Positions 2,221 to 64,000 of a DNA stretch of 64,000 nucleotides are shown here, in pieces. Every line of letters begins with the position of its first letter. Positions within the stretch are counted from its first letter, which is position 1. A program made the position numbers and the translations under genes. Under the pieces are notes generated by a model. That model searched no databases, was not told the DNA's origin, and worked only from the letters and a program-made list of their open reading frames with translations. The stretch is from Macrostomum lignano (taxonomy: Eukaryota): the NCBI GenBank assembly GCA_002269645.1, contig NIVC01002477.1:19875-83874 (forward strand), written 5' to 3'.

Positions 2221-2637
2221 GGAATGCGTTGCTGAGCTGTATAAATTTTGAGCTTTTAAAGGTATTTATTTAGCATTTCTGACTGTGGTACTTCCAGTAG
2301 TAAATAGGCACACCTAAATTTGTGTGATCGTTTCCAATTTCCCTATAGGTCCATATACTATACGTAAAGATCTTTAAACTTTCAGCTGATAGTAAGAAAA
2401 GAAATAACTTTTCAAATAAAGACAAGGATTATAAATTTCTACGCAGAATAAGTAAATTGCCAGTGCATTATCAACCGGCAGTGCTTCGCCCATAGAACAC
2501 GGAGAAGGACTCAGAAAGTACTTAGATTCTATAGCGCTGCATACAGCCTATTCATACTCAAAAGACTCTCGACAAAATAGTAATTAAATATAGCTGATCA
2601 GCAGAAACATCCTAAACTCGTTCAGCTTAAGTAACAT

Positions 2638-3966
2638 ATGCACGAGGATTCGAACATGGCTAGCAACTATCAGAAGCTCGAACACGTGCGGGCTCGCTAC
2701 TCCAGGCTTCAGCACCAGCGCCAGCACGTCGAGGAGCAGCAAACGCATGCTCAGCAGCAGAAGCAGCAAAAACAGCAGCAGCAGCAGCAACAACAGCAAC
2801 AACAACAACAACAACAACAACAACAAAATCAGCAGCAACACCAGCAACTCAGTCGCAGTCGCGATCGCCGGTACCTTCTGCCTCCGCCACCGATCCGCAA
2901 TCCTCTACTGGCTTCTCAGGACGTTGATCATTCTTTGCGACGCTTGCAAAGGCAGCAGCACCAGTTCCAAGGCGCACATCTGCAGCAGAAGGAGCCGCAG
3001 CAGCCTCAGAATGAAGCTCAGCAGCCTGAGAGAGAACCTCAGCAGCCTCAAAAGGCAGCTCAGCAGCCTCAGACTCAGAAAGAGCCGCAGCAGCCCCAGA
3101 GTTCAGAGATGTTGCAGCGGTTTCTCGCCAGTCTCCCGTCGACGCCGCCGCCGCCTCTCAGACGGTCGCGCTCGCCGGCGCCCTGGTCGCAACGCCATCT
3201 CGCAACAAAGCTCGTCTCGCTGTCGCGGGCATCCCTCCTGGCTTTCCCTCCGACCACCAACACGGAGGCGGCGGCGCCCCCAGCCGACCAGGCCGCCTCA
3301 CCCGACGTGGCGACGGATGCCGAGGCCAACTCGAGCAGCCTTGTGAGCTCCTCGTTCGACGCCGTGACCACGCTCGACGAGCCGACCGCGACCCGGCTAA
3401 CGCCAGCTCCGCCTCCTGACCCGTCGCCGTCGCCTCGGCAGCACCGCCAGCAGCAGCCGTCGCTACGCCGGTCTCGTCACACCGCGCGGATTCGCAGCTC
3501 CTCGCTGGAGATCCGCTCGATGCCGAGCTCGCCGTGGCGGGAGCAGCAGCGCCAGCCGCAGCTCAGAGACAACCTCACAGCGCCGCCGGTGCCGAAGCCG
3601 AGGTCGCGAAACCACGCAGCCGACGGGCCGAGTCATCGCGGCCGGTCCAACTCGAACAGCCGGCAGCCGGTCGAGCAGCAGACTCCAGTCTGCCAGGTGT
3701 TCCGCGTGACAGACGCGTCTGACGTTTTCAGCTCTCTCGTGACCAGGGAGGATCGCCGGCTGTTGAAAGTCCTCAGCCACTTCAGCTGCCAGGCCGAGGT
3801 TCTGGAGACGCTGAAGCTGCCTCGGCGGTGTCGCGGGGCAATCGTCAGCATCAGCGGGCCAGACTGGCGGCGGCTGAGCTGGTGCGTTGACAGACTTCAG
3901 AGCCTCTTTCCCGAGTGGGAGCTCAAGTTTCAAATGCGCAGCTGCTGCAGAACCCGGCTTTGTTGA
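2638..3966 (+). CDS. PolyQ/Pro-Ser-Arg-rich protein with a C-terminal degenerate KH-like domain (copy A, 442 aa)
   Basis: Uninterrupted GC-rich ORF between AT-rich flanks, with a near-identical second copy at 55947-57266. The last about 85 aa show a KH-like pattern (VFRV..FSSLVTRED..LLKVLSHFSCQAEV..AIVSISGPDWRRLSWCVDRLQSLF). Confidence 0.7.
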   Translation: MHEDSNMASNYQKLEHVRARYSRLQHQRQHVEEQQTHAQQQKQQKQQQQQQQQQQQQQQQQQQNQQQHQQLSRSRDRRYLLPPPPIRNPLLASQDVDHSLRRLQRQQHQFQGAHLQQKEPQQPQNEAQQPEREPQQPQKAAQQPQTQKEPQQPQSSEMLQRFLASLPSTPPPPLRRSRSPAPWSQRHLATKLVSLSRASLLAFPPTTNTEAAAPPADQAASPDVATDAEANSSSLVSSSFDAVTTLDEPTATRLTPAPPPDPSPSPRQHRQQQPSLRRSRHTARIRSSSLEIRSMPSSPWREQQRQPQLRDNLTAPPVPKPRSRNHAADGPSHRGRSNSNSRQPVEQQTPVCQVFRVTDASDVFSSLVTREDRRLLKVLSHFSCQAEVLETLKLPRRCRGAIVSISGPDWRRLSWCVDRLQSLFPEWELKFQMRSCCRTRLC

Positions 3967-6062: not shown

Positions 6063-9000
6063 CTACTGCTGGCTCGTGCCCCGCTTGTCATCTGAAATTT
6101 ATTTAGCAAACCAATTCATTTTTCAGATATCAAACCATCATTACAGAATGATAGCTAATAGGAATCTGCACATTATCCACCCAAATCTGCACATTACCCA
6201 ACACAATCTGCACATTACCCAGCACAATCTGCACGTTACCCAATCCATTCTGCACATTACCCAACACAATCTGCACATTACCCACCGCAATCTGCACATT
6301 ACCCACCCAATCTGCACATTATCCACCCCAATCTGCACATTACCCACCCAATCTGCACATCACCCAGCACAATCTGCACATTACCCAATCCATTCTGCAC
6401 ATTACCCAACACAATCTGCACATTAACCACCGCAATCTGCACATTACCCACTCCATTCTGCACATTACCCACCGCAATCTGCACATTACCCACCGCAATC
6501 TGCACATTACCCAATCCATTCTGCACATTACCCAACACAATCTGCACACTACCCAACACAATCTGCACATTACCCACCGCAATCTGCACATTACCAACCA
6601 CAATCTGCACATTAACCACCATAATCTGCACATTACCCCGTCGCTCACCCAAGCCGCGCAGCAGCCTCCGGCTAGTCGGGCTCAACGCGCGATCGGCTTC
6701 GCAGCCACCTGCGGTGCCCCGCCTCCTCCCTTGCAGTCGGTTGTCGCCGGCTTTGCCTTTGATCTGGCCGTCGGCATCGGCGTCGCCGTTACCTTCCCCG
6801 GCGCTATCGCCGACTTCGTCGTCGCCAACGGCCTCCTTGTCAGCCGGCCGGCGGCCCAGCAGGCTCTGGATGTCGGCCAGGGCGGCGCGGATGTCGTCGG
6901 CGCCGGCGCCGCCGTTGGATTTGCCTTCGTCGACAGGTGGCGGCTTTCGGCGAGGCTGCGGCGGCGCCTGCGGCTGTTGCTGGGGCAGCTGCTGGCGAAG
7001 CACCTGCTGGCAAGCCGCCAGCTGCGCACGGAGTCGGCGATTCGCAGCCTCGGCCTGCGTCGGTTTTTTTGAATATTTTAAACAAAGAATCCTCAGATCC
7101 CAATCTAGATCCTCAGATCCCAATCTATAATCCTCAGATCCGAATCTAAAATCCTCAGATCATAATCTAAAATCCTCAGATCCCAATCTAAAATCCTCAG
7201 ATCCCAATCTATAATCCTCAGATCCGAATCTAAAATCCTCAGATCATAATCTAAAATCCTCAGATCCCAATCTAAATTCCTCAGATCCGAATCTAAAATC
7301 CTCCGATCAGAATCTAAAATCCTCAGATCCCAATCTAAATCCTCCGATCAGAATCTAAAATCCTCAGATCCCAATCTAAAATCCTCAGATCCCAATCTAA
7401 ATCCTCCGATCAGAATCTAAAATCCTCAGATCCCAACTTCAAATCCCTGATCAAATGGGATTTGATTTGAGGTTGGGATCATGGAATTTGAGATTGGGAT
7501 CAAATGGGATTTGATTTTAAATCAAATGGGATTTGATTTCAAACTTCAAATCCCCTAATCTAAATCTTAAATCCCATGATTCCAATCTTAAATTTTTAGA
7601 TCCCTATTTCAAATCCTTAGATCCCAATCTAAAATCCCCAGATTTTGCACCTGTCGAGCCGAGTTCGTGGCCTCCTTGCACTGCCTCGCCCAGGTGTCCA
7701 GCTCGGCCACCAGCCTCTCGTTGTCAGCCTCCAGAGCCATCAGCCGGCGCTCCTGCAGCTGTTGCTGCCGGCGTTGCTGCTTTTTGGCCGCGGCAGAGGC
7801 GGCCGAGGCGGACGGGGCTGCCTGGTGACGGCGGGCAGCTGCTGCCGTGGCCTCCTCCGCCTCCTCCTTTGCTTTGAGCGCGTCCCTGGATGGGGAGGAC
7901 AATTAGCGACGGGTTTGTGCGGGAGTTCAAACTGGGATTCGAGGTTGGGATCATAGGATTTGAGATTGGGATCATAGGATTTGAGATTGGGATCATAGGA
8001 TTTGAGATTGGGATCATAGGATTTGAGATTGGGATCATAGGATTGGAGATTGGGATCATAAGATTTGAGGTTGGGACCATAGGATTTGAGATTGGGATCA
8101 TATGATTTGAGATTGGGATCATATGATTTGAGATTGGGATCATAGGATTTGAGATTGGGATCATAGGATTTGAGATTGGGATCATAGGATTTGAGATTGG
8201 GATCATAGGATTTGAGATTGGGATCATAGGATTTGAGATTGGGATCATAGGATTTGAGGTTGGGACCATAGGATTTGAGATTGGGATCATAAGATTTGAG
8301 GTTGGGATCATAGGATTTGAGATTGGGATCATATGATTTGAGATTGGGATCATATGATTTGAGATTGGGATCATAGGATTTGAGATTGGGATCATAGGAT
8401 TTGAGATTGGGATCATAGGATTTGAGATTGGGATCATAGGATTTGAGATTGGGATCATAGGATTTGAGATTGGGATCATAGGATTGGAGATTGGGATCAT
8501 AAGATTTGAGGTTGGGACCATAGGATTTGAGATTGGGATCATATGATTTGAGATTGGGATCATATGATTTGAGATTGGGATCATAGGATTTGAGATTGGG
8601 ATCATAGGATTTGAGATTGGGATCATAGGATTTGAGATTGGGATCATAGGATTTGAGATTGGGATCATAGGATTTGAGATTGGGATCATAGGATTTGAGA
8701 TTGGGATCATAGGATTTGAGATTGGGATCATAGGATTTGAGATTGGGATCATATGATTTGAGATTGGGATCATAGGATTTGAGATTGGGATCATAGGATT
8801 TAAGAAAGGGATCATGGGACTTGAGATTGGGATCATATGATTTGAGATTGGGATCATAGGATTTGAGATTGGGATCATAGGATTTAAGAAAGGGATCATG
8901 GGACTTGAGATTGGGATCCAATGGGATTTGATACTGCGATAATGGGATTCGAGGTTGGGATCATGGTATTCGAGGTTGGGATCATGGGATTTGAGATAGG

Positions 9001-12000
9001 GATAATGGGATTGGAGGTTGGGATCATGGGATTCGAGGTAAGGACCATGGGATTTGATATTGGGATCACGAGATTCGAGATAGGGATCATGGGATTTGAG
9101 ATTGGGATCAACTGGGATTTCAGACCTAGCCAGAGCCAGCTCCGCCCGGGTGTCCTTCAGTCTGGCGGCGAGTTCGGCCGCCCGCTTGCGCAGCGCCTCG
9201 GCCTCCCGGCCGCTGGCCACCCGAGCAGCTTCAGAGTCGGCCCGCAGCGCGGCCACCTCCAGCCGCGAGTCCTTGAGCTCCAAGTACAGCGAGTCGCGTT
9301 CAGCGGCGGCTCGCTCAAGCTCGGCAACGCCAAGGCGACCGCGAGACTCCAAAGCCGCCAGCTGGCCGCTGCGGTCCTCGAACAGGCTGACGAGGTGCCT
9401 GCGGATGCAAATGGATCGTCGGCTATTGAAGTTTGCCACTGTGTTGAAAACTTTGCAGTGTAAACTGCTGTCTCTGTTACAGCTCCAGCTCCCGACTTTT
9501 CACCCAGACAGTCAGCCGCGTTCAAAGCCGATTCTACCCACCGGAAATCCACCCCGAGGCCCCCAAAACCCGCCAGAGAACCCGCCCCTAAACACTCCAG
9601 AAAATCCGCCCCTAAACCCTCTAGAGAATCCGCCCTTAAACCCTCCAGAGAATCCGCCCCTAAACCCTCCAGAGAATCCGCCCCAAACCCGCCAGAGAAC
9701 CCGCCCCCAAACCCTCCAGAGAATCCGCCCTTAAACCCTCCAGAGAATAAGCCCTTAAACCCTCCAGAGAATCCGCCCCCAAAACCCTATAGAGAATCCG
9801 CCCTTAAACCCTCCAGAGAATCCGCCCCTAAACCCTCCAGAGAATCCGCCCCAAACCCGCCAGAGAACCCGCCCCCAAAACCCGCCAGAGAACCCGCCCC
9901 TAAACACTCCAGAAAATCCGCCCCTAAACCCTCTAGAGAATCCGCCCTTAAACCCTCCAGAGAATCCGCCCCTAAACCCTCCAGAGAATCCGCCCCAAAC
10001 CCGCCAGAGAACCCGCCCCCAAACCCTCCAGAGAATCCGCCCTTAAACCCTCCAGAGAATAAGCCCTTAAACCCTCCAGAGAATCCGCCCCCAAAACCCT
10101 ATAGAGAATCCGCCCTTAAACCCTCCAGAGAATCCGCCCCTAAACCCTCCAGAGAATCCGCCCCAAACCCGCCAGAGAACCCGCCCCCAAACCCTCCAGA
10201 GAATCCGCCCCTAAACCCGGCAGAGATTCCGCCCCCAAACCCTTCAGAAACCTCCCCTAAACCCTCCAGAGAATCCGCCCCTAAACCCGCCAGAGAATCC
10301 GCCCCCAAACCCTCCAGAAACCTCCCCTAAACCCTCCAGAGAATCCGCCCCTAAACCCTCCAGAGAATCCGCCCCTAAACCCGGCAGAAAATCCGCCCCT
10401 AAACCCGGCAGAAAACACGCTCCCAGGCTGCACCTGTAGTCCTCCAGCACGCTCGCCAGCTGCTGCGCCCGCCCAGCCTCCTGCTCATACTGCCTGTCCC
10501 GCTCAGCCGCCAGTCTCGCCACCTCCTCGTCCCGCTGCCGCAGTCGCTCAGTCAGGTGTCGGAGCTCCTCGTTGGAAGCGGACAGCCGCTCCTCAATCTC
10601 CAGCCGCTCCTCCGACTGATCGGCGAGGCGGCGCTCCAGAGCGGCCACGTCGGCTTTAACTGCCTGCAGCTCCTTGGCTTGCAGCTCGCAGCGCTCAGTC
10701 TCTGCCGCGAGCTGAGTTGCCAGGCTGCGGGACTGCGCCTGCGTGTACTGCTGCTCCTCCGCCAGGGCTTTGGTCACCTGATGGGGGCGGGCCGCGATTT
10801 CAATGCGTGACGAAGTTGTTAAATTCTGGAAATCTCACCCTGATATCTCTTAACTGATGATTCAGAAATTTCATCCTGAGATCTATCCATGATGATTCAT
10901 AAATCTTACGCTTAGATCTCTTTTAATGATGATTCAGAAATCTCACCCTGAGATCTCTTTATGATGATTCAGAAATCTCACCCTGAGATCTCTTTATGAT
11001 GATTAAGAAATTTCACCCTGAGATCTATCCATGATGATTCATAAATCTTACCCTTAGATCTCTTTTAATGATGATTCAGAAATCTCACCCTGAGATCTCT
11101 TTATGATGATTCAGAAATCTCACCCTGAGATCTCTTTATGATGATTCAGAAATTTTACCCTGAGATCTATCCATGATGATTCATAAATCTTACCCTTAGA
11201 TATCTTCTAATGATGATTCAGAAAGCTCACCCTAAGATCTATTAACTGACGATTCAGAAATCACACCCTGAGATCCATTATACTAAAAATTCTCTTACTG
11301 TTGATTCAGAAATCTCAACCTGAAATCTATCCACGATGATTCAGAAATCTCACCCTGAGATCTCTTTTAATGATGGTTCAGAAATCTCACCCTAAGATCT
11401 CTTACTGTTAATTCAGAAATCTCACCCTAAGATCTATTAACTGACGATTCAGAAATCTCACCCTGAGATCTATTAACTGACGATTCAGAAATCTCACCCT
11501 GAGATCTATTAACTGACGATTCAGAAATCTCACCCTTAGATCTCTTACTGTTGAGTCAGAAATCTCACCTTGAGATTATTTTAATAACAATTCAGAAATC
11601 TCACCCTGAGATCTCTTACTGATAATTCGGAAATCTCACCCTGAGACCCGCCTGTCTCACCTGCTCCTTAGTAAGCGAGTCGGACTCCTCTTTCAGCGCC
11701 TCAATCAGGGCCCTGAGTTCGGCCACTTCAGTAGACTTGGCAGTCAGTTTAGTCTTGACCTCGTGCAGCTCGGTCTCAGCCGAGTCTCTGGCCTCGGAGA
11801 GCTCATCCCGTTCCGCCTTCAACTCTTCAACCTCAGCCTCGGCGGACTTGAGCCTCGGCTCGATCAGCGCTGACTCTTTGATTGCCTCCTCTCTGAGTCG
11901 CTTGGACTCCGCAAGCTCAGTCTGAGTCGAGTCCAGGCCCGACTCGAGAGCCGATCGCTTCGATTCCCAGGCTTTCCTGTCTCGGTCATAGTCGTCAATT

Positions 12001-15000
12001 AGGCGGGACAAGGTGGACTCCAGTTCGGCCACTCGGCTGGACCGGGAGTCCGCCTTCGAGCGCAGCTGCTCGGCCTCTCGACGGGCGTCTTCGGCTACGA
12101 GTTCCAGTCTGCAGTGGCGGAGGGGACGTTGAGGAGGGGACTGTTTGATTTACTAATAGTAGTAAGTTGCTTTGTGAGGTGAGAGGGTGAGAGGGTGAGA
12201 GGGTGAGAGGATGAGAGGGTGAGAGGGTGACAGAGTGAGATGGTGAGAGGGTGACAGGGTTACAGGGTGACAGAGTGAGAGGGTGAGAGGGTGACAGGGT
12301 GACAGGGTGAGAGGGTGAGAGGGTGACAGAGTGAGAGGGTGAGAGGGTGACAGGGTGACAGGGTGAGAGGGTGAGAGGGTGAGAGGGTGACAGAGTGAGA
12401 GAGTGAGAGGGTGACAGGGTGAGAGGGTGAGAGGGTGAGATGGTGACAGGGTGACCGGGTGAGATGGTGAGATGGTGACAGGGTGACAGAGTGAGAGGGT
12501 GAGAGGGTGACAGAGTGAGAGGGTGACAGGGTGAGAGGGTGACAGGGTGAGAGGGTGACAGGGTGACAGAGTGAGAGGGTGAGATGGTGACAGAGTGAGA
12601 GGGTGACAGGGTGAGAGGGTGAGAGGGTGACCGGGTGAGAGGATGAGATGGTGACAGAGTGAGAGGGTGACAGGGTGAGAGGGTGACAGGGTGAGAGGGT
12701 GACAGGGTGACAGAGTGAGAGGGTGACAAGGTGAAAGGGTGAGAGGGTGAGAGGGGCGATGGAGGCGAGAGGAGAGGTGGGGCAGCGGAGTTGAGATGCT
12801 CAATACAGAATTTGTCAAATTTGACCTTCTCTGTTCCTCGGCCGATCTGTCCCGCAGTTTCCTGAGCTCGGCCTCGTACTGGTCAGCTGACTCGCTGCAC
12901 CGGCGTTGCCAGGCGGCCTCCAGCTCGGACTTCTCGGCCAGGAAGGAGCGGCGCGACTCGGACAGTTCATGCTCCAGAGATCCGATGTCGCGCAGCCGGT
13001 CCTCGATCTCAGCTGAGAACTCTTGCAGGCATCTGGGTAGGGAGGAGAGAGCGCGAATCGTTGAATGGGGATTTTTATAGCAAGACATGTTTTGATTTTT
13101 TATAAACCCAGTGAAAAAGAAATCCTAGGATTTATAAAATCATCTGATTATTTTGACTAGGAAAATTTCAGACAACCTAAAATTGTGATGATTCTAAGCA
13201 TGGGGAATTCCAAGCAAGGAGAACTCAAAACAGGGGAAATCATAAACAGGGGAAACCCCAAAAAGGGAAATTTCAAACTTGGAAAACTCCAAGGAGGGGG
13301 AATCTCAAGAATGTGGGAATCTGGAGCATGGGGGAATACCAGTCATGGGGAATTCCAAGCAGGGGAATCTCAATCAGGGCAAATCCTAAGAATGTGGGAA
13401 TCTCAAGAATGGGGGAATCCCAAGCATGTAGAAATTTCATGCAGGGGGAATCTCAAGCATGTGGGAATCTCAAGAATGGGGGAATTCCAAGCAGGGGAAT
13501 TCAAAGCAGGGGGAATCTTAAATTGGATAATTCTAATCATGGGGAATTCCTAGCAGGGGGAATCCCAAGCATGTGGAAATTCCAAGCAAGGGGAAGCCCA
13601 AATAGGGGAATTCTAATCATGGGGAATTCCAAGCAGGGGGAATCCCAAGAATGAGGGAATGTAGAGTATTATACCTCCCAAGAAACGTCATACAAATTGT
13701 TAACATACTACTTCTACATTTTTATTCAGTAGTATACTAAGTAGCATGTATAAAATTAAGTACTGAATCACAGATATATTTTAATCAACCAATCACAAGA
13801 GAGTAAAGTCAAACATGTTACTTTTTGCAACCGACCAATCACGTGTGACCTACAATTATCAGTTCAAACCCCATCTGCGATTCATCATTAGGCGTGCACC
13901 CGGATGAACCAATCAAAGGTAACCAAAAATAACCCAGCTACAGTAACCAATACGCGCGCTTACACTAGACTAGTGGCCTAACTTTCTACCCTGTCATGCT
14001 TGACAGCAACCAAAGCGTGACCCTTTGACATTTACGAAAAAGGTGATGGACGACCTCGCGAGGGGTCCGCGTTTGCCTATAAATACAAGTGGTACGTAGC
14101 GGACCCGGAGCCAACAACCGAACCTCCAGAAGGAGGAGCTCCGAAGAGGAAGCCTTAGGAGGACTTCCTGCAGACCAATTAGTCAATCAAGACTCGGCTG
14201 AGTTTCTGTGGTAAGCCTTACTCATTTGCGCCGGTTGTTTGAGTCGACTCATTATTGTTGTTGAGTTTGAGTCTATTGAGACTCCATTGGTTGTAGTCTC
14301 CAGAAGGACTACCCTGATAGATCTTAGAGGACTATCAGTGATTACCGGAGCTATACCTAGAGTGCATTAAGGCACTGCTAGAAGGAGAAGGCTTAACTGA
14401 AACCGCAGTACGGCGCAGGGATCCCATTGTTAATACAAAGCTTCTGATTGGTTCGAATGACAGATTCCAGCCGGAAACGACTTCATTGGAAGTAAAGAGG
14501 AACCTGGACCAGGACAACTAAATCTAGACGTCTAAACTGATTGAAACTACGCAAAGGAAGAGCTCTCCAAAACAGGACTCAAAGTAATAAATACCTTCAT
14601 TTGATTACTGGGTTGCCTAGCAGTAGCTAGAAGTGATTGTTCTTTGATTACTGAGAAAGGTCTTAGTAATAAGGAACACATCAGGAATTCCAAGCAGGGG
14701 GAATCCCAAGCAGGGGGAATCCCAAGCAGGGGAATCCCAAGCAGGGGGAATCCCAAGCAGGGGAATCCCAAGCAGGGGGAATCCCAAGCAGGGGGAATCC
14801 CAAGCAGGGGGAATCCCAAGCAGGGGGAATCCCAAGCAGGGGAATCCCAAGCAGGGGGAATTCCAAGCAGGGGGAATTCCAAGCAGGGGGAATCCCAAGC
14901 AGGGGAATCCCAAGCAGGGGGAATCCTAAGTACTGGGAGAGTGGAATTCCAAGAACGCCTACCTCTCCAGTGTGGTCGCCAGCACGCCGTCTTCCTGTTG

Positions 15001-30384: not shown

Positions 30385-30905
30385 ATTCCTCCCTGAGAAT
30401 CTACCCCATAGATCTCTCCCTGAGAATCTACCCCATACATTAGATCTCTCCCTAAGAATCTACCCCAAAGATCTCTCCCTGAGAATCTACCCCATAGATC
30501 TCTCCCTAAGAATCTACCCCAAAGATCTCTCCCTAAGAATCTACCCCAAAGATCTCTCCCTGAGAATCTAACCCATAGATCTCTCCCTGAGAATCTAACC
30601 CATAGATCTCTCCCTGAGAATTTACCCCATAGATCTCTCCCTGAGAATCTAACCCATAGATCTCTCCCTGAGAATCTAACCTTTAGATCTCTCCATGAGA
30701 ATCTGCCCCATAGATCTCTCCCTGAGAATCCACCCCATACATTAGATCTCTCCTTGAGAATCTAACCCATAGATCTCTCCCTGAGAATCTAACCTTTAGA
30801 TCTCTCCATGAGAATCTGCCCCATAGATCTCTCCCTGAGAATCCACCCCATACATTAGATCTCTCCTTGAGAATCTATCCCATAAATCTAACCCTGAGAA
30901 TCCAG
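30385..30905. repeat. About 29-bp minisatellite (CCCTGAGAATCTACCCCATAGATCTCT)
   Basis: About 17 units. Confidence 0.95.
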
Positions 30906-39819: not shown

Positions 39820-40770
39820 ATGCCAATCTGCAAATGTACCTGAATGTGACATTCCACAATAGACTCAAATTGATGCTCAACAGCCAATCTGCAAAGGTAT
39901 CTGAATGTGACATTCCACCATGGACTCAACTTGATGCTCAACAGCCAATCTGCAAATGTATCTGAATGTGACATTCCACAATAGACTCAAATTGATGCTC
40001 AACAGCCAATCTGCAAATGTACCTGAATGTGACATTCCACCATGGACTCAACTTGATGCTCAACAGCCAATCTGCAAAGGTATCTGAATGTGACATTCCA
40101 CAATAGACTCAAATTGATGCTCAACAGCCAATCTGCAAATGTATCTGAATGTGACATTCCACCATGGACTCAACTTGATGCTCAACAGCCAATCTGCAAA
40201 TGTATCTGAATGTGACATTCCACCATGGACTCAACTTGATGCTCAACAGCCAATCTGCAAATATACCTGAATGTGACATTCCACAATAGACTCAAATTGA
40301 TGCTCAACAGCCAATCTGCAAATGTACCTGAATGTGACATTCCACCATGGACTCAACTTGATGCTCAACAGCCAATCTGCAAAGGTATCTGAATGTGACA
40401 TTCCACAATAGACTCAAATTGATGCTCAACAGCCAATCTGCAAATGTATCTGAATGTGACATTCCACCATGGACTCAACTTGATGCTCAACAGCCAATCT
40501 GCAAAGGTATCTGAATGTGACATTCCACAATAGACTCAAATTGATGCTCAACAGCCAATCTGCAAATGTACCTGAATGTGACATTCCACCATGGACTCAA
40601 CTTGATGCTCAACAGCCAATCTGCAAATGTACCTGAATGTGACATTCCACCATGGACTCAACTTGATGCTCAACAGCCAATCTGCAAATGTATCTGAATG
40701 TGACATTCCACCATGGACTCAACTTGATGCTCAACAGCCAATCTGCAAATGTATCTGAATGTGACATTCT
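39820..40770. repeat. 59-bp minisatellite with two alternating variants
   Basis: About 16 units; variant A is CCACAATAGACTCAAATT and variant B is CCACCATGGACTCAACTT. Confidence 0.95.
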
Positions 40771-47976: not shown

Positions 47977-48570
47977 TTAGAAGAAATAATTCTCCAGGGC
48001 TTCATCGGCCTCGTCGACCTCCGACGCAGCTGGTCGACGCCGTCGTTCATCCCTGCCTGGGCGTCCCAGCTCGGAGCGCTCGCGTCCTCTCTTGGCGTCA
48101 TTTTTCTTTTTGTCCTTCTGCTTCCTCTCTGGCCACAAATTGCGCCGGGCCTCCTTAGCGTAGGCGTAAAGCGTTTTGCCACGAGTGGGCGAACCGCAGC
48201 CTTTGAAATGGACCTCCAACTGGTCCTTGTACTTCACTTTGGAAGCGTCGAAATCAGTGGCAATCAGTTGCTTGTCGTTGCGCACGATCATTGTGATGTT
48301 GTCAGTTGACTGGTTAAAGAAAGTAGCCAGGTTGTTGCTAAGGTTGGCGAAGCTGTTGTTAAGAGTGTTCAGCTGCAGTGTGCGAAAGTACGGATGTGGC
48401 TCGTCCACCTTGCGCACAAGCAAATAAAAAGTCCCGTTCGAGCCGCTGGACCAATTGCCCCGTCCGCCGCGGTTGCCGCTTCGCCATCTCTTTCTGCCCC
48501 AGGCGTCCGAGCTGCCGACAAGGCAGACTGCTGCCACCAGCACAATTAAGAGTGCCAACGAGAATTTCAT
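47977..48570 (-). CDS. Intronless secreted protein (197 aa): signal peptide, W/R/G-rich N-terminus, N-glycosylated ubiquitin-like core, basic then acidic tail
   Basis: MKFSLALLIVLVAAVCLVGSSDA signal peptide; six N-x-S/T sequons; compact ORF between AT-rich flanks. Confidence 0.8.
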   Translation of the reverse strand: MKFSLALLIVLVAAVCLVGSSDAWGRKRWRSGNRGGRGNWSSGSNGTFYLLVRKVDEPHPYFRTLQLNTLNNSFANLSNNLATFFNQSTDNITMIVRNDKQLIATDFDASKVKYKDQLEVHFKGCGSPTRGKTLYAYAKEARRNLWPERKQKDKKKNDAKRGRERSELGRPGRDERRRRPAASEVDEADEALENYFF

Positions 48571-49647
48571 CTCTATGTCTTACAGAAAGTCTGCCAATTC
48601 GAAGAGTTCCAGAATCACAGTCTTATGATCCCGTCTGACACTCGGCCTCCACTCCCTTTTATGCTGATTTTGAACAACCCAATCTTGGCCGGTCAAGGTT
48701 TTCCGCTGGGTTTAAACTGCTGATAATGTTTGCACTGGAAAATGAAAAAACTTGTTATGATTAAACTGGCTATTCTTGTCAGAACCAGTCCAATACCAGC
48801 CTAAGTCACTTGCATAAATGATTCTTATCACTGAATTTCAGCTCTCTGAAAGCTTTGACAAAGGTCCTCGAGTGCTTTGGTCAAAAGAGCACCAATTCCT
48901 TTCTTTGCTACAATCGATGTGCCTAAAGCAATACGTCAAACTGATTAGATAACTTCAGACCCTTTTCTATGTGCAGGAAAAGGTGGGAAGAAATCTCAGT
49001 AGAGCCATTTTAGGTCTAAGTACGAGTGTATACAATCCAGGCTGTCTACAATGAGTCATACATGTAATGAACTAAAACTCATCCCAGACCAATGTAGAAT
49101 TTCTGTTTCCTGTTTTTACATTCTACTATTTGCAAGGAACATAAATAGATTTCATTAATTCAGTGGTAGGATCATCAAACTTTGGGCAGGCACACGTGTG
49201 CACATGCGCATACACATAAACTCCGGAATGAATAAATTAGGTGCTATTGTGTACTGAAGATAATCCAGTTAGAGACAACCTAGCCTCTGGCAGATCTCAA
49301 CAATGCGTCCTTTGTTTGCCCCCTTCTCAGCTGTTTGTGCTATCAGCTCTGAGTAAATTAGTTATGATCACACTCAGACAGGCTTTTGTCAGCTGAGTTA
49401 ATGAGCTGCGAGCATCCGAAGTGGACTGCACTTGCTATGTCTGCTATGTTTGATTTGTAACCATCCTATTTGTGCAGTTGCTCCGTAATTAATTATCTAC
49501 AATGAACCATTGTGTTTCATTTCGCTGTTGACCATGTCATTCAATTAATTAAGTCACACTTTTAGCAAATAAATGGCGCTGCATCGCTTCGGTGGCCAGA
49601 AAAATCCTGCTCATTGTTTGCCTCAAAATCAGCCAACGTAAGCCTCC

Positions 49648-51474
49648 ATGTTTGATCAAATTTCGTTACATTCAGTGTCAAATGACGACAACGAAAAAGA
49701 ACTCTGCCCTATGCAGAGCTGCGGCAAGCTCCATAGTAACCGATTCGATGCTTTGTACTCTGGCCGATTGGGCGAGTTCGAAAGCTACCTGGAAAGTCTG
49801 GCTCCGAAGGAGGTGCGCGAGCTTCTGTTGCCAACAACCGATGCTGTTGAAAATGCGGCTTTGCGATACGGAAGCCTTCAGCCTCTGAGCTCCATGACGG
49901 TGGCCGAGAAAAGAGTCGAGAATTTATCAATCACTCCACTGATTGAGCTGATGATCAATCAAAGAACCGAGTTAGTTATTAAAGCATTGGCGCTCATGAC
50001 AGAAGATACCGAATCACAACATGCTGTCGCTCACAGTGCAAGATTTTCCTTATTCCAACTCGTCGACTTTTGTCGCTGTTTTCCAAACAGAGAGCTGCAG
50101 ATGGCTGAACTTTTCACTCAGCTGGCGAATGCACAGCCGACCCTTTGTGTGAGATGGCTGTTAGTGGAGACCGCTCAAGAAGCTGTAAGACCATTAGAGT
50201 ACGCTTCCATTTGGAATTGTTTTCAGCTGGCCAAAGTCTTCATTGACGTGCCCGGCTATCTCAAAACGACAATTGTCTCAGAGAAAGACAGCAGACTTGA
50301 GATTGACCGCTTCGACTTCTCCAACTATCGCTGGTTCACGGGCTCCCGGTTTACTAGGTCGCCATTTGTTCAACTGAGCTGCGCCACCACGCGACTGATT
50401 AGCGACTTTATCCCGGCGGGATACGCAGATTTCTACGACTGTCCCGCGGTTCAGGGCTACCTGCCAAAAATTCTAGCAACCGGCCCGACTTCACGCAGAT
50501 CCACTTACATACTCATCGTATTTTACGTATTATATTACACAATTTACACAGTCACCCTAACGGCGCGCCTGTTCACAGGAGGTCAATTCAGTTCGAGCTC
50601 TATACTCAAAGTGGCTGGCGAAGCTAATAATACAATCTCGTATCTGACGAAGCTGCCGCAGCAGGTATTAACTGCTCTACTCTACCTGTTCTATTTTAGG
50701 GTAGTTATCCAGCTGCTCTTTATATTCATGGCCTCATCGCTATTGATTTCCTCGCATCTGACCAACATTAGCCTTCCACGGCCGTCTAGAAGGCGGTGGC
50801 TGCCGCTGCATTGGTTACGCAGTGCTATATCGCTCTCTAGCGACATACGCGAAGGCTCGTCCATTGTCTATCTCTTGCATCAGTTCCTGTCGCTAATGCT
50901 AGAGTTTGGCTGGACAAAAATGAACTACGTCACCGTCAATGATGAGCGATTTGTAAATCCTGAAAATTTGAAGATCTTCTTTGCGTTGCACATTCTATTC
51001 CTAATACTATTGATGATATTCTTCTTCGATGAACTGGCCTCGCACTTCAAGGTGTTTTTCTACTTGATTCACAGTTTGCAAGAATCAATGAAGGTTTTGT
51101 ACATCATCATCATGCCTGTCTTTGTACTATGCACCACGATATTCATCTGTCATCCATTCACGGAAGACACTGACAAGGACCTATTGGAAGTACTGGCTGA
51201 CATGATGGTGGGCGCTAGCCGCTACGCGCTGAGCCTCGGTGACTTTTCCGGTCCCAGTAAAGACTTGGTCCTGTGGGGCCAGCCTATGTTCTTCATCATG
51301 GTATCCCTGTTCCTCGTGAACTTCTGCATCGCTCTACTGACGCAACGCATCGCACTAATGGAAGAGCGAACCGAGCTGAGGCAGATAATGCGAATTGTAG
51401 ATTTGCTCCATCAGATATGGCTGATTGCAAGGCTTATTATGAAACGATTTAAAAACATAGCTGAAAACCGTTGA
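49648..51474 (+). CDS. Intronless divergent TRP-like six-TM cation channel (608 aa)
   Basis: Multiple TM helices in residues about 285-560; pre-S1 FYDCPAVQGYL; S4-S5 FKVFFYLIHSL..SMKVLYIII; pore RYALSLGDF; S6 VSLFLVNFCIALLTQ followed by a TRP-helix-like EERTELRQIMRIVDLL. Confidence 0.75.
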   Translation: MFDQISLHSVSNDDNEKELCPMQSCGKLHSNRFDALYSGRLGEFESYLESLAPKEVRELLLPTTDAVENAALRYGSLQPLSSMTVAEKRVENLSITPLIELMINQRTELVIKALALMTEDTESQHAVAHSARFSLFQLVDFCRCFPNRELQMAELFTQLANAQPTLCVRWLLVETAQEAVRPLEYASIWNCFQLAKVFIDVPGYLKTTIVSEKDSRLEIDRFDFSNYRWFTGSRFTRSPFVQLSCATTRLISDFIPAGYADFYDCPAVQGYLPKILATGPTSRRSTYILIVFYVLYYTIYTVTLTARLFTGGQFSSSSILKVAGEANNTISYLTKLPQQVLTALLYLFYFRVVIQLLFIFMASSLLISSHLTNISLPRPSRRRWLPLHWLRSAISLSSDIREGSSIVYLLHQFLSLMLEFGWTKMNYVTVNDERFVNPENLKIFFALHILFLILLMIFFFDELASHFKVFFYLIHSLQESMKVLYIIIMPVFVLCTTIFICHPFTEDTDKDLLEVLADMMVGASRYALSLGDFSGPSKDLVLWGQPMFFIMVSLFLVNFCIALLTQRIALMEERTELRQIMRIVDLLHQIWLIARLIMKRFKNIAENR

Positions 51475-52161: not shown

Positions 52162-53099
52162 TCAACTGAAGATCCCCGTAGGTAGCCAGCGCTTCACGTT
52201 GAGTGCATTCTCGGCGAGACCTTTGATGCTTTCCTTGAAGTCCGAATTGATCTTTTCGATTAGAAACTTCTTCTCAGATTCGATCAAGTGTGTGACGACC
52301 GGTTTCACTAGGAAGCGATAAAATATCGACATGTTTGTTATTCCCACCGTGATTGCCCCGATCTCCTCTACTTTCAGCTTTTGCATGTCCATTTTTCCTT
52401 CCTTGATGTTGAAAATGAGGCTCACTATGCCGTCGATATACTCTGTGGTGGCATTGAACGTGGGGTGATATACATGGTTCCGAAGCGTCACGTCACTGTC
52501 GTACGAGACCACAACTGGGCCGATGCGAATGGAGAACGTAATCTACAATTAGTGAAGGTTAAGGAATACAGTAAGCAAGTGATTTGACTATTATTGCAAT
52601 TGTTACGAACAGAAGGCCTAAAAGTGAAATGACCCACCTCGGCTTTTCCTTCTTGCATATCTAAGCCGACTTCGCCGTGTCTTCTAGCCGTTGACAAGCC
52701 TTTGCAGACGCCGTTTTTGAGCTCGGCCACGCCGGGATAGGTTTTGCAGCAGACTTGCTTTTCGAATTCAACGCTGCGCTCAGGCAGTTTCAGCGGGTCC
52801 AAGTTAGCCAGCTTCAGCTTGGGCCCCACCGACTTCAGTAGGTCGTCGGCTAGATCGTTGACCATGCCACGAATCTTGTTGGTTGGTATTAGTGACAAAA
52901 TCGAGTTGAAGTTTCGCAACTGTTGTTCGATGCTCTGATTCTGCTGATTCTGCTGCTCAGTAGTGCTGCTGCTGCTGCTGCTTTTTCGCAGTTTTTTCTT
53001 TCGACTCATCTCTTTCGGAATGCTCTTCAGTTTAGTATCGCCTTCGATCGCATTCTCCTTCTTAGGATTGTCGTCCACCTGAAATCCCACTGTTTCCAT
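52162..53099 (-). CDS. Der p 7 (group-7 allergen)/TULIP-fold lipid-binding-like protein; exons 53099-52638, 52542-52162
   Basis: LDPLKLPERSVEFEKQV..GVAELKNGVCKGLSTARRHGEV, a beta-strand series and a C-terminal helix match the Der p 7 pattern as recalled; phase-0 GT-AG intron. Confidence 0.75.
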
Positions 53100-55946: not shown

Positions 55947-57075
55947 TCACCTGACCCCGCAGCTGCGCATTTGAAACTTGAGCTCCCACTCGGGAAAGAG
56001 GCTCTGAAGTCTGTCAACGCACCAGCTCAGCCGCCGCCAGTCTGGCCCGCTGATGCTGACGATCGCCCCGCGACACCGCCGAGGCAGCTTCAGCGTCTCC
56101 AGAACCTCGGCCTGGCAGCTGAAGTGGCTGAGGACTTTCAACAGCCGGCGATCCTCCCTGGTCACGAGAGAGCTGAAAACGTCAGACGCGTCTGTCACGC
56201 GGAACACCTGGCAGACTGGAGTCTGCTGCTCGACCGGCTGCCGGCTGTTCGAGTTGGACCGGCCGCGATGACTCGGCCCGTCGGCTGCGCGGTTTCGCGA
56301 CCTCGGCTTCGGCACCGGCGGCGCTGTGAGGTTGTCTCTGAGCTGCGGCTGGCGCTGCTGCTCCCGCCACGGCGAGCTCGGCATCGAGCGGATCTCCAGC
56401 GAGGAGCTGCGAATCCGCGCGGTGTGACGAGACCGGCGCAGCGACGGCTGCTGCTGGCGGTGCTGCCGAGGCGACGGCGACGGGTCAGGAGGCGGAGCTG
56501 GCGTTGGCCGGGTCGCGGTCGGCTCGTCGAGCGTGGTCACGGCGTCGAACGAGGAGCTCACAAGGCTGCTCGAGTTGGCCTCGGCATCCGTCGCCACGTC
56601 GGGTGAGGCGGCCTGGTCGGCTGGGGGCGCCGCCGCCTCCGTGTTGGTGGTCGGAGGGAAAGCCAGGAGGGATGCCCGCGACAGCGAGACGAGCTTTGTT
56701 GCGAGATGGCGTTGCGACCAGGGCGCCGGCGAGCGCGACCGTCTGAGAGGCGGTGGCGGCGTCGACGGGAGACTGGCGAGAAACCGCTGCAACATCTCTG
56801 AACTCTGGGGCTGCTGCGGCTCTTTCTGAGTCTGAGGCTGCTGAGCTGCCTTTTGAGGCTGCTGAGGTTCTCTCTCAGGCTGCTGAGCTTCATTCTGAGG
56901 CTGCTGCGGCTCCTTCTGCTGCAGATGTGCGCCTTGGAACTGGTGCTGCTGCCTTTGCAAGCGTCGCAAAGAATGATCAACGTCCTGAGAAGCCAGTAGA
57001 GGATTGCGGATCGGTGGCGGAGGCAGAAGGTACCGGCGATCGCGACTGCGACTGAGTTGCTGGTGTTGCTGCTGA

Positions 57076-57106
<31 letters not shown>

Positions 57107-57266
57107 GCTGTTGTTGCTGCTGCTGCTGCTGTTTTTGCTGCTTCTGCTGCTGAGCATGCATTTGCTGCTCCTCGACGTGCTGGCGCTGGTGCTGAAGCCT
57201 GGAGTAGCGAGCCCGCACGTGTTCGAGCTTCTGATAGTTGCTAGCCATGTTCGAATCCTCGTGCAT
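55947..57266 (-). CDS. PolyQ/KH-like protein, copy B; probably continues by splicing (donor AG|GTGAGA after 55951)
   Basis: About 99.5% identical to 2638-3945; the apparent stop TGA lies inside a consensus 5' splice site. Confidence 0.7.
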
Positions 57267-58430
57267 AGGACGCTTGTTTTTAGAGCCGTTCTTCCTACTT
57301 TTATATTTATGACAATGTGAGGAAAATAAAGGTGCCTAGGCTCTTCACAGAGCTGGAATCGATGTACTTTTAGGCCTAACGAGAGCAAGTTTCTCGCTCT
57401 GTTTAAGGCATTGAGCCATTCTTAAAAAATGGAATAAGACTGCTTTTATAATACGAAAGCGCAGTGTCTGTGGGCTAAAGCTCTAGTATTAAAGAAGGCC
57501 TTACTTGTGGCTATTCGGAGTTTTAAAAATAGTTTTCCTTGTCGAAGCAATTTTGCAGGGATTCTATCATTTAGCGTTCGTGAGGCTACAAGATACAACT
57601 AAAAACCACACTGCACATTTCACCAAGACCCTCGGATCCTGATTGAGCTCTTGGATTCCAACATGAGGGGTCATACGACATTTTTCTAGCTTACAAAAAG
57701 CCACCTCAACCCACTACTGGAATACATTGTCCGGGTACTGCTGCACAAGATAGCAATGCGAAACTGTTCAGCATAAATTGTTTATCTCTTTGAAGTTGAT
57801 GCGTATCGACATACAGCGCGAACACAAAAAGCATTTTATATTTTTCCGGAGCAAAGCTATAAAAAAGGCAAATACGAGCGTAATTTCAAACTAAATCCAA
57901 AGTACTTTCAGACGCACCAGGTCTAAAAATGTGATTATAATTTTTATAGCTTTGTAATGACGAAGCATGACAGGAAGTGCCACACGGTCTGCTTGTTTTG
58001 CTAAACCGGAAAGTATTACAGAGCAAATCATATTTTAGCTATGGTTACAACGAGATGCAGAAGGTAATCGACGAAATCCGCACGATTCGCACAGCGACGA
58101 AATGCTTTCACTTTTCTGTCCTACCCTTTCTCTCCATTTCGTGATCCGTTCAGCCCCTCCCCCCTCCTATACTTAGCGACTGCACGTTAGCGAAATCTAA
58201 TGCAGCCTGCTACACAGTGTTTGGGCCTAACGAAGGAAATGCTGTCAGTACGTCACTTCAGGTGTACGAAGGCTTTCAACCCCTGCGACCCCCACCCACC
58301 GGCATGCTGATAAGCCCCGGCAGTTTCGCCTGTGTGGTTCAAAATGTAAAAACTGGTCAACTGACATTCACTGTTGTTGAACTTCAGTTAAGCGTCAATG
58401 TAATTTCTCGAGTTTGTGCAGTACCGCAGG

Positions 58431-64000
<5,570 letters not shown>

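Follow-up and report, generated by a model that had tools for sequence, protein, structure and literature searches.

We examined a 64,000-nucleotide stretch of the genome of the flatworm Macrostomum lignano (assembly GCA_002269645.1, contig NIVC01002477.1, positions 19,875 to 83,874; hereafter the window) and, within it, a 197-codon open reading frame (ORF) on the minus strand at 47977-48570. This ORF is a genuine M. lignano gene, constrained and coding; it is lineage-restricted and probably encodes a small secretory-pathway protein whose mature form would be ~174 amino acids long with an isoelectric point (pI) of ~10. Our best overall explanation, to which we give about an even chance, is that its product is a lineage-restricted secreted glycoprotein consisting of a core binding module and charged flanks. 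Already on record as hypothetical, the protein joins many other taxon-restricted secreted proteins that have yet to be characterised.

Both the ORF list and the sequence showed an intronless frame running from an ATG at 48570-48568 to a TAA at 47979-47977, with an in-frame TAA 12 nt 5' of the ATG. A previous interpretation of this locus, made from the letters of the DNA (the sequence-only reading), had given the right coordinates for the ORF, which lies on the minus strand, and every string it cited is found in the protein: WGRKRWRSGNRGGRGNW (residues 24-40), FYLLVRKV, YFRTLQL, NSFANLSNNLATFFNQSTDNITMIVRNDKQL, and DFDASKVKYKDQLEVHFKG. The Lys/Arg-rich and then acidic tail with dibasic sites that it described is likewise present (residues 126-180, then 181-197). 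The window protein is identical to a deposited Macrostomum lignano "hypothetical protein" in NCBI and UniRef, and its cluster mate at 96% identity is named BOX15_Mlig017608g3 [Macrostomum lignano]. A homeologous locus (L001, NIVC01000312.1) aligned with the window across ~8 kb; the coding sequences (CDSs) of the two are 96.5-97.5% identical and their immediate flanks roughly 91-93%. Between the CDSs there are 11 synonymous and seven non-synonymous changes, giving a ratio of non-synonymous to synonymous substitution rates (dN/dS) of 0.18, and we conclude from this value that the reading frame is under purifying selection. The annotation of the M. lignano assembly was derived from RNA-seq transcriptional units (PMC5730564); the gene model therefore implies transcription.

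Among 5.8 billion proteins, word-indexed searches recovered the window protein and nothing else. One relative, P0004, emerged when 1.84 billion representatives were scanned in full with HMMER (E = 6.6e-8, 37% identity); its residues 60-171 match residues 44-149 of the window protein, and it corresponds to M. lignano BOX15_Mlig013076g1 (Mlig013076.g1; locus L002). A profile built from both subfamilies yielded no further protein relatives, and none of the 53 patterns that the core profile matched in metagenome contigs was confirmed. Searches of Pfam, NCBIfam, and PDB sequences returned nothing relevant, whether the query was the full protein, the core alone, the paralog, or either of two family profiles. 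The paralog has the same architecture as the window protein: a signal peptide, a variable sequon-rich or basic arm, a conserved core, basic motifs, and an acidic end that includes aromatic residues (PDWDEMDD). The consensus of the conserved core is T..LVRKVD..PY[FY]R ... NIT.IVRN..QL..TD.D ... D..E, and most invariant columns fall either within this core or in residues 126-143, which directly follow it. The charged flanks (the Trp/Arg-rich arm, the Lys/Arg-rich tail, and the acidic end) are poorly conserved between the paralogs; only R30, N39, S41, and G43 are invariant in the N-terminal arm, and the tail includes a conserved G..TR..T..A.AK..RR stretch and G.PGR motifs. A paralog at 36-37% identity that retains the same architecture implies long persistence under selection. 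The paralog gene contains one 102-nt GT..AG intron at codon 79 (L002 10237-10338), right after the conserved PYY motif, and the window gene is continuous at this position; the intron was therefore lost or gained within the family.

The N terminus of the protein and its sequons point to the secretory pathway. Strongly hydrophobic 15-residue windows are confined to the N terminus (Kyte-Doolittle mean of 3.2, with a maximum of 0.37 elsewhere), the putative cleavage site has small residues at -3 (S) and -1 (A; SSDA followed by W), and the window protein and P0004 share an M[KR]FSL start. The window protein contains no second hydrophobic segment, no hydrophobic C terminus that would suggest a glycosylphosphatidylinositol anchor, and no KDEL. 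It carries six N-X-S/T sequons (N39, N45, N71, N76, N86, and N91), an excess over the mean of 1.66 in composition-preserving shuffles (p = 0.0023), and the paralog carries seven against a shuffle mean of 1.17, a count reached in none of 20,000 shuffles (p < 5e-5). All six sequons are kept in the homeolog, where two of the seven amino-acid differences fall inside sequons (N72I and T93S) and leave the sequon intact both times; NIT91 is the one sequon invariant throughout the family. Because a lone N-terminal hydrophobic segment, the -3/-1 pattern, and an excess of conserved sequons occur together, the protein fits the class of N-glycosylated secretory proteins. We consider its entry into the endoplasmic reticulum (ER) and its N-glycosylation to be well supported in silico, and the suggestion of a secreted glycoprotein in the sequence-only reading was upheld at this level; five sequons do fall within the core or border it, as that reading held, but the total is six.

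Two low-confidence AlphaFold2 models of the protein, when combined, place strands at residues 46-54 and 61-67, a helix at 74-86, strands at 93-98 and 101-104, a short helix at 109-111, and a strand at 117-125. This order of strand, strand, helix, strand, strand, short helix, and strand is canonical for the beta-grasp fold, albeit in a prediction of low confidence, and we regard the core as about as likely as not to be a beta-grasp. The UniRef labels of the paralog cluster and the marginal similarity of the paralog to the transcobalamin beta domain, both described below, lean weakly in the same direction. AlphaFold2 also placed helices at residues 134-167 in the Lys/Arg-rich tail, again with low confidence.

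According to the explanation we favor, the protein would enter the ER, be cleaved after A23, be N-glycosylated at up to six sites, and be exported by a gland or epithelial cell. Its core would fold as a compact alpha/beta module, most likely minimal and beta-grasp-like and closest to the extracellular transcobalamin-beta/SLBB and the DCX-type domains, not to ubiquitin; this core would act as a binding module. Through their charge, the polycationic flanks would keep the protein on anionic material, for example mucus, matrix, granule contents, or the surface of a partner, and while the protein is stored the acidic end may neutralise them. We offer only tentatively, as a possibility that falls short of an even chance, the more specific proposal that flatworms have a beta-grasp family of their own: secreted minimal domains with a coat of glycans and polycationic tails, reduced relatives of the DCX or transcobalamin-beta domains, which would work in an extracellular secretion such as seminal fluid, adhesive, or mucus.

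Several results weigh against the favored explanation. The AlphaFold2 models had a mean predicted local distance difference test score of 42.6 from the single sequence and 39.7 with a four-sequence alignment, and a Foldseek search of the PDB with both models gave no match at E <= 0.001. No family member, nor either isolated core, matched DCX, DUF4430, or the ubiquitin clan in current Pfam at E <= 10, and the search of PDB sequences with the family profiles, reported above, belongs with these negatives. The hhalign comparisons gave a probability of 0.18% (E = 0.33) for DCX and of 1% for the transcobalamin beta domain, and the window protein by itself showed no significant similarity to the latter (p = 0.77 and 0.18). 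The M. lignano full texts and paper supplements searched for the identifiers Mlig017608 and Mlig013076 held no tissue or expression data, the charge-mediated binding role is one that composition suggests, and the gene may be partly dispensable, because one of its three genomic copies has a premature stop (see below). The only identifier match in those texts, Mlig017608.g5 in a large orthogroup, was not interpreted, because g5 may be a different gene. Absence of the gene from Logan-assembled runs was rejected as evidence against expression, as the coverage of M. lignano in that collection is not established.

We weighed the affinities of the core together. The sequence-only reading had seen the pattern of ubiquitin in it, and a true ubiquitin-family (UBL) homolog recruited into the secretory pathway has only that by-eye pattern and the predicted order of secondary-structure elements in its favor. 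The sequence did not bear the pattern out: BLASTP of the window protein against ubiquitin gave E = 18 over 6 residues, Smith-Waterman scores were lower than those of shuffled sequences on average (z = -1.3, window protein; z = -1.0, paralog), current Pfam gave no match to the clan at the permissive threshold stated above, and UBL entries appeared in the Foldseek output only at noise level (E >= 4). Ubiquitin-family homology, and with it this recruitment, is thus extremely improbable. The same reading held that UBL domains are almost always intracellular, which is wrong at the level of the fold; the C-terminal domain of transcobalamin is an SLBB beta-grasp, and the transcobalamin clade mostly carries signal peptides (PMC1796856), so secreted beta-grasp domains are not new. 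UniRef gives the names of two beta-grasp families, "Doublecortin domain-containing protein" to the paralog and "DUF4430 domain-containing protein" to the paralog's cluster mate, although neither label was reproduced with current Pfam, a DCX hidden Markov model (HMM), or hhalign. DUF4430 is the C-terminal domain of transcobalamins, and short DUF4430-only proteins occur in teleosts (PMC4350170). The protein could accordingly be read as a stand-alone transcobalamin-beta-like (DUF4430/SLBB, PF14478) domain acting outside the cell, where its ligand would be a corrinoid or a different small, soluble molecule; the signal-like N terminus of the window protein, as judged by heuristics, is consistent with that location. 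We compared the family with the beta domain of human transcobalamin (residues 306-409), whose sequence was checked residue by residue against PDB 2BB5 and 4ZRP. The paralog gave a marginal match (BLASTP E = 0.005 in a single comparison, over 43 residues; shuffle p = 0.003) with the common motif ..LLQ....(W/Y)R..DG(D/E).IE(I/L), but the window protein, as noted, gave none. SLBB domains are marked by two conserved glycines, one after strand 2 and one before strand 3, and the transcobalamin clade by a ligand-contacting beta-hairpin insert after the helix (PMC1796856). From residue 47 to residue 123 the window protein lacks Gly altogether, and in one low-confidence AlphaFold2 model the helix at 74-85 is followed after just six residues (NQSTDN) by the strand at 92-98, leaving no room for the B12-contacting hairpin; the alpha/alpha toroid partner of transcobalamin is missing as well. 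We therefore regard this reading as rather improbable. DCX domains have ~80-90 residues and a ubiquitin-like fold (PMC1550402), and a DCX-type cytoskeleton-binding protein would require that the N-terminal hydrophobic segment is no secretion signal. The DCX test used an HMM and an alignment built from 121 DCX N-domain sequences, a narrow profile that makes it a weak test; its scores were not significant. The hhalign alignment had a sensible register over 83 columns at 27% identity (VRKVDEPHPYFRT versus VRFYRNGDRYFKG), and shuffling gave p = 0.07 (window protein) and p = 0.025 (paralog). Against this, the HMM scored ~0 bits, the hhalign probability was negligible, PF03607 was not matched, and the signal-like segment together with the significant and conserved excess of sequons favors the ER lumen over the cytosol in which DCX proteins work. 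A review of the DCX superfamily is silent on signal peptides or secretion (PMC1550402). A cytoskeletal protein of this kind is hence quite unlikely, even more so than a transcobalamin-like domain.

The remaining alternatives concern what the gene does. In the precursor model, first put forward in the sequence-only reading, proprotein convertases would cut the protein at dibasic sites, the N-terminal arm and the tail would yield cationic peptides with an antimicrobial or adhesive role, and the acidic end would be a neutralising pro-segment. Eleven overlapping dibasic positions, the Trp/Arg-rich arm, and the basic stretch followed by an acidic end are all consistent with such processing, and a basic-then-acidic charge layout recalls cationic-peptide precursors with anionic pro-pieces. 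Conservation points the other way: of the dibasic pairs the paralog keeps only R142-R143, with neither K27-R28 nor the RRRR run conserved, and the glycosylated core is the conserved, selected part of the protein while the arms are its least conserved. The RRRR run is also followed by Pro, and Pro at P1' is unfavourable for furin-type enzymes; no repeated peptide units were found in the protein. The precursor model is consequently unsupported, and we judge it unlikely. A functionless gene, either a decaying recent ORF or an annotation artefact, would fit an orphan with no homolog outside M. lignano in the searches made and with no expression data in the paper supplements searched. It would also fit a third copy, L003 (NIVC01002656.1), which is nearly identical to the window copy and has TCA changed to TGA at codon 88 (~L003 2983-2985). 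This change hits the S of an NQS sequon, and the ORF annotated there has just 104 amino acids, from M94 (P0003); the stop marks either a young pseudogene, a null allele, or an assembly error. The low dN/dS, a CDS better conserved than its flanks, a diverged paralog that keeps the same architecture, and the transcript-derived annotation all speak for a functional gene, and absence of function is very improbable. We accordingly retain the secreted glycoprotein with a core binding module and charged flanks as the best explanation.

The upstream regions of the family share putative regulatory elements. The TATA-like box 5' of the window gene, which may be a promoter element, has a counterpart in GATAAAAGG, ~100 nt 5' of the paralog gene in L002 and thus at similar spacing. 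An element of the form ACTCTTCGAA(A)TT occurs in the leaders of both paralog types (in the window at the leader position tabulated below, on the minus strand, and at L002 ~9960-9972), although the proteins are only ~36% identical. The shared leader element and the shared TATA-like box are hints of common regulation of both paralogs. The features of the gene are collected in Table 1.

Table 1. Features of the gene and its predicted protein, in coordinates of the window.
Feature	Residues and sequence	Position	Strand	Basis or remark
Complete intronless CDS, Mlig017608 transcript cluster	197 codons + TAA	47977..48570	-	ORF list, deposited protein, dN/dS 0.18
Signal peptide (predicted)	1-23, MKFSLALLIVLVAAVCLVGSSDA then W	48502..48570	-	Hydrophobicity, -3/-1 residues
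Basic Trp/Arg/Gly-rich N-terminal arm	24-43; 6 K/R, no acidic residues, pI 12; sequon N39	48442..48501	-	Composition
Conserved alpha/beta core (predicted)	44-125; sequons N45, N71, N76, N86, N91	48196..48441	-	Paralog alignment, two low-confidence AlphaFold2 models
Lys/Arg-rich tail	126-180; 21 K/R in 55 residues, pI 11.4	48031..48195	-	Composition, paralog alignment
Acidic C-terminal piece	181-197, AASEVDEADEALENYFF; 6 D/E, pI 4.05	47980..48030	-	Composition
TATA-like box, ~93 nt 5' of ATG	CATAAAAGG	48655..48663	-	Identical in window, L001, and L003
Leader element	ACTCTTCGAATT	48596..48607	-	Common to upstream region of diverged paralog (ACTCTTCGAAATT)

Other parts of the window contained further genes and repeats. 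Adjoining the studied gene is a 608-amino-acid ORF at 49648-51474 (+), with many hydrophobic segments and no Pfam match at E <= 1, which has the look of an orphan multi-pass membrane protein. Its identity to the homeolog, 98-99%, is far higher than that of the flanks. At 52162-53099 (-) there are two adjacent ORF pieces, likely exons of one gene, conserved at 97.5-100% relative to the homeolog, and the upstream piece matches the Pfam family Grp7_allergen (JHBP/lipid-binding-type; E = 4.6e-9). A gene for a Gln-rich low-complexity protein is present twice in opposite orientations, at 2637-3945 (+) and ~55975-57280 (-), with ORFs of 442 and 439 amino acids and no Pfam match; both copies match L001 1411-2713 at 95-98% identity. 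An ORF piece at 63214-63966 (+) gave a strong match to the PI-PLC-X domain (E = 1.3e-31) and is probably a phospholipase C exon at the window edge. Tandem satellites, whose periods range from 7 to 312 bp, form a dense patchwork at 1-20700, 30389-30902, 39822-40769, and 60223-60709; examples are a 28-bp unit repeated 45 times at 803-2085, a 21-bp unit repeated 56 times at 7935-9110, and a 61-bp unit repeated 15.5 times at 39822-40769. Long ORFs cross several of these satellites, and one yields a spurious Cornifin-like Pfam match at 12153-13088. The abundance of satellites and the patchy composition of the window agree with its being genomic DNA of this free-living flatworm.

Should the core of the protein turn out to be a beta-grasp, that fold would have an extracellular representative of unusually small size, and one belonging to the lineage-specific equipment of a model flatworm in which adhesion, regeneration, and sexual conflict are studied. 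The main value of the gene at present is as a candidate for expression mapping and RNA interference in M. lignano; it opens no long-standing question.

Among known systems, ubiquitin and the UBL modifiers may share the broad beta-grasp fold class with the window protein, as judged from predicted element order alone, but the window protein differs from them in having no sequence similarity, no C-terminal Gly-Gly, and a secretory-pathway context. The DCX domain (PF03607; PROSITE PS50309) is similar to the window core in size and predicted element order, and there too the setting differs, since DCX proteins are cytoplasmic microtubule binders that usually contain tandem domains, whereas the window protein would have a single domain, with six sequons, behind its predicted signal peptide. 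The transcobalamin beta/DUF4430 domain is small and belongs to animal proteins that are secreted and glycosylated, as the window protein is predicted to be in silico; the window protein lacks its Pfam match, hairpin insert, hallmark glycines, and alpha/alpha toroid partner and has polycationic and acidic tails added. The remaining comparison is with M. lignano gland proteins such as the putative seminal fluid proteins from an in situ screen, which are taxon-restricted and secreted (PMC5977470). As judged from sequence, the window protein resembles these in being small, with a predicted signal peptide, no informative homolog, and a compact gene that appears to have its own TATA-like promoter.
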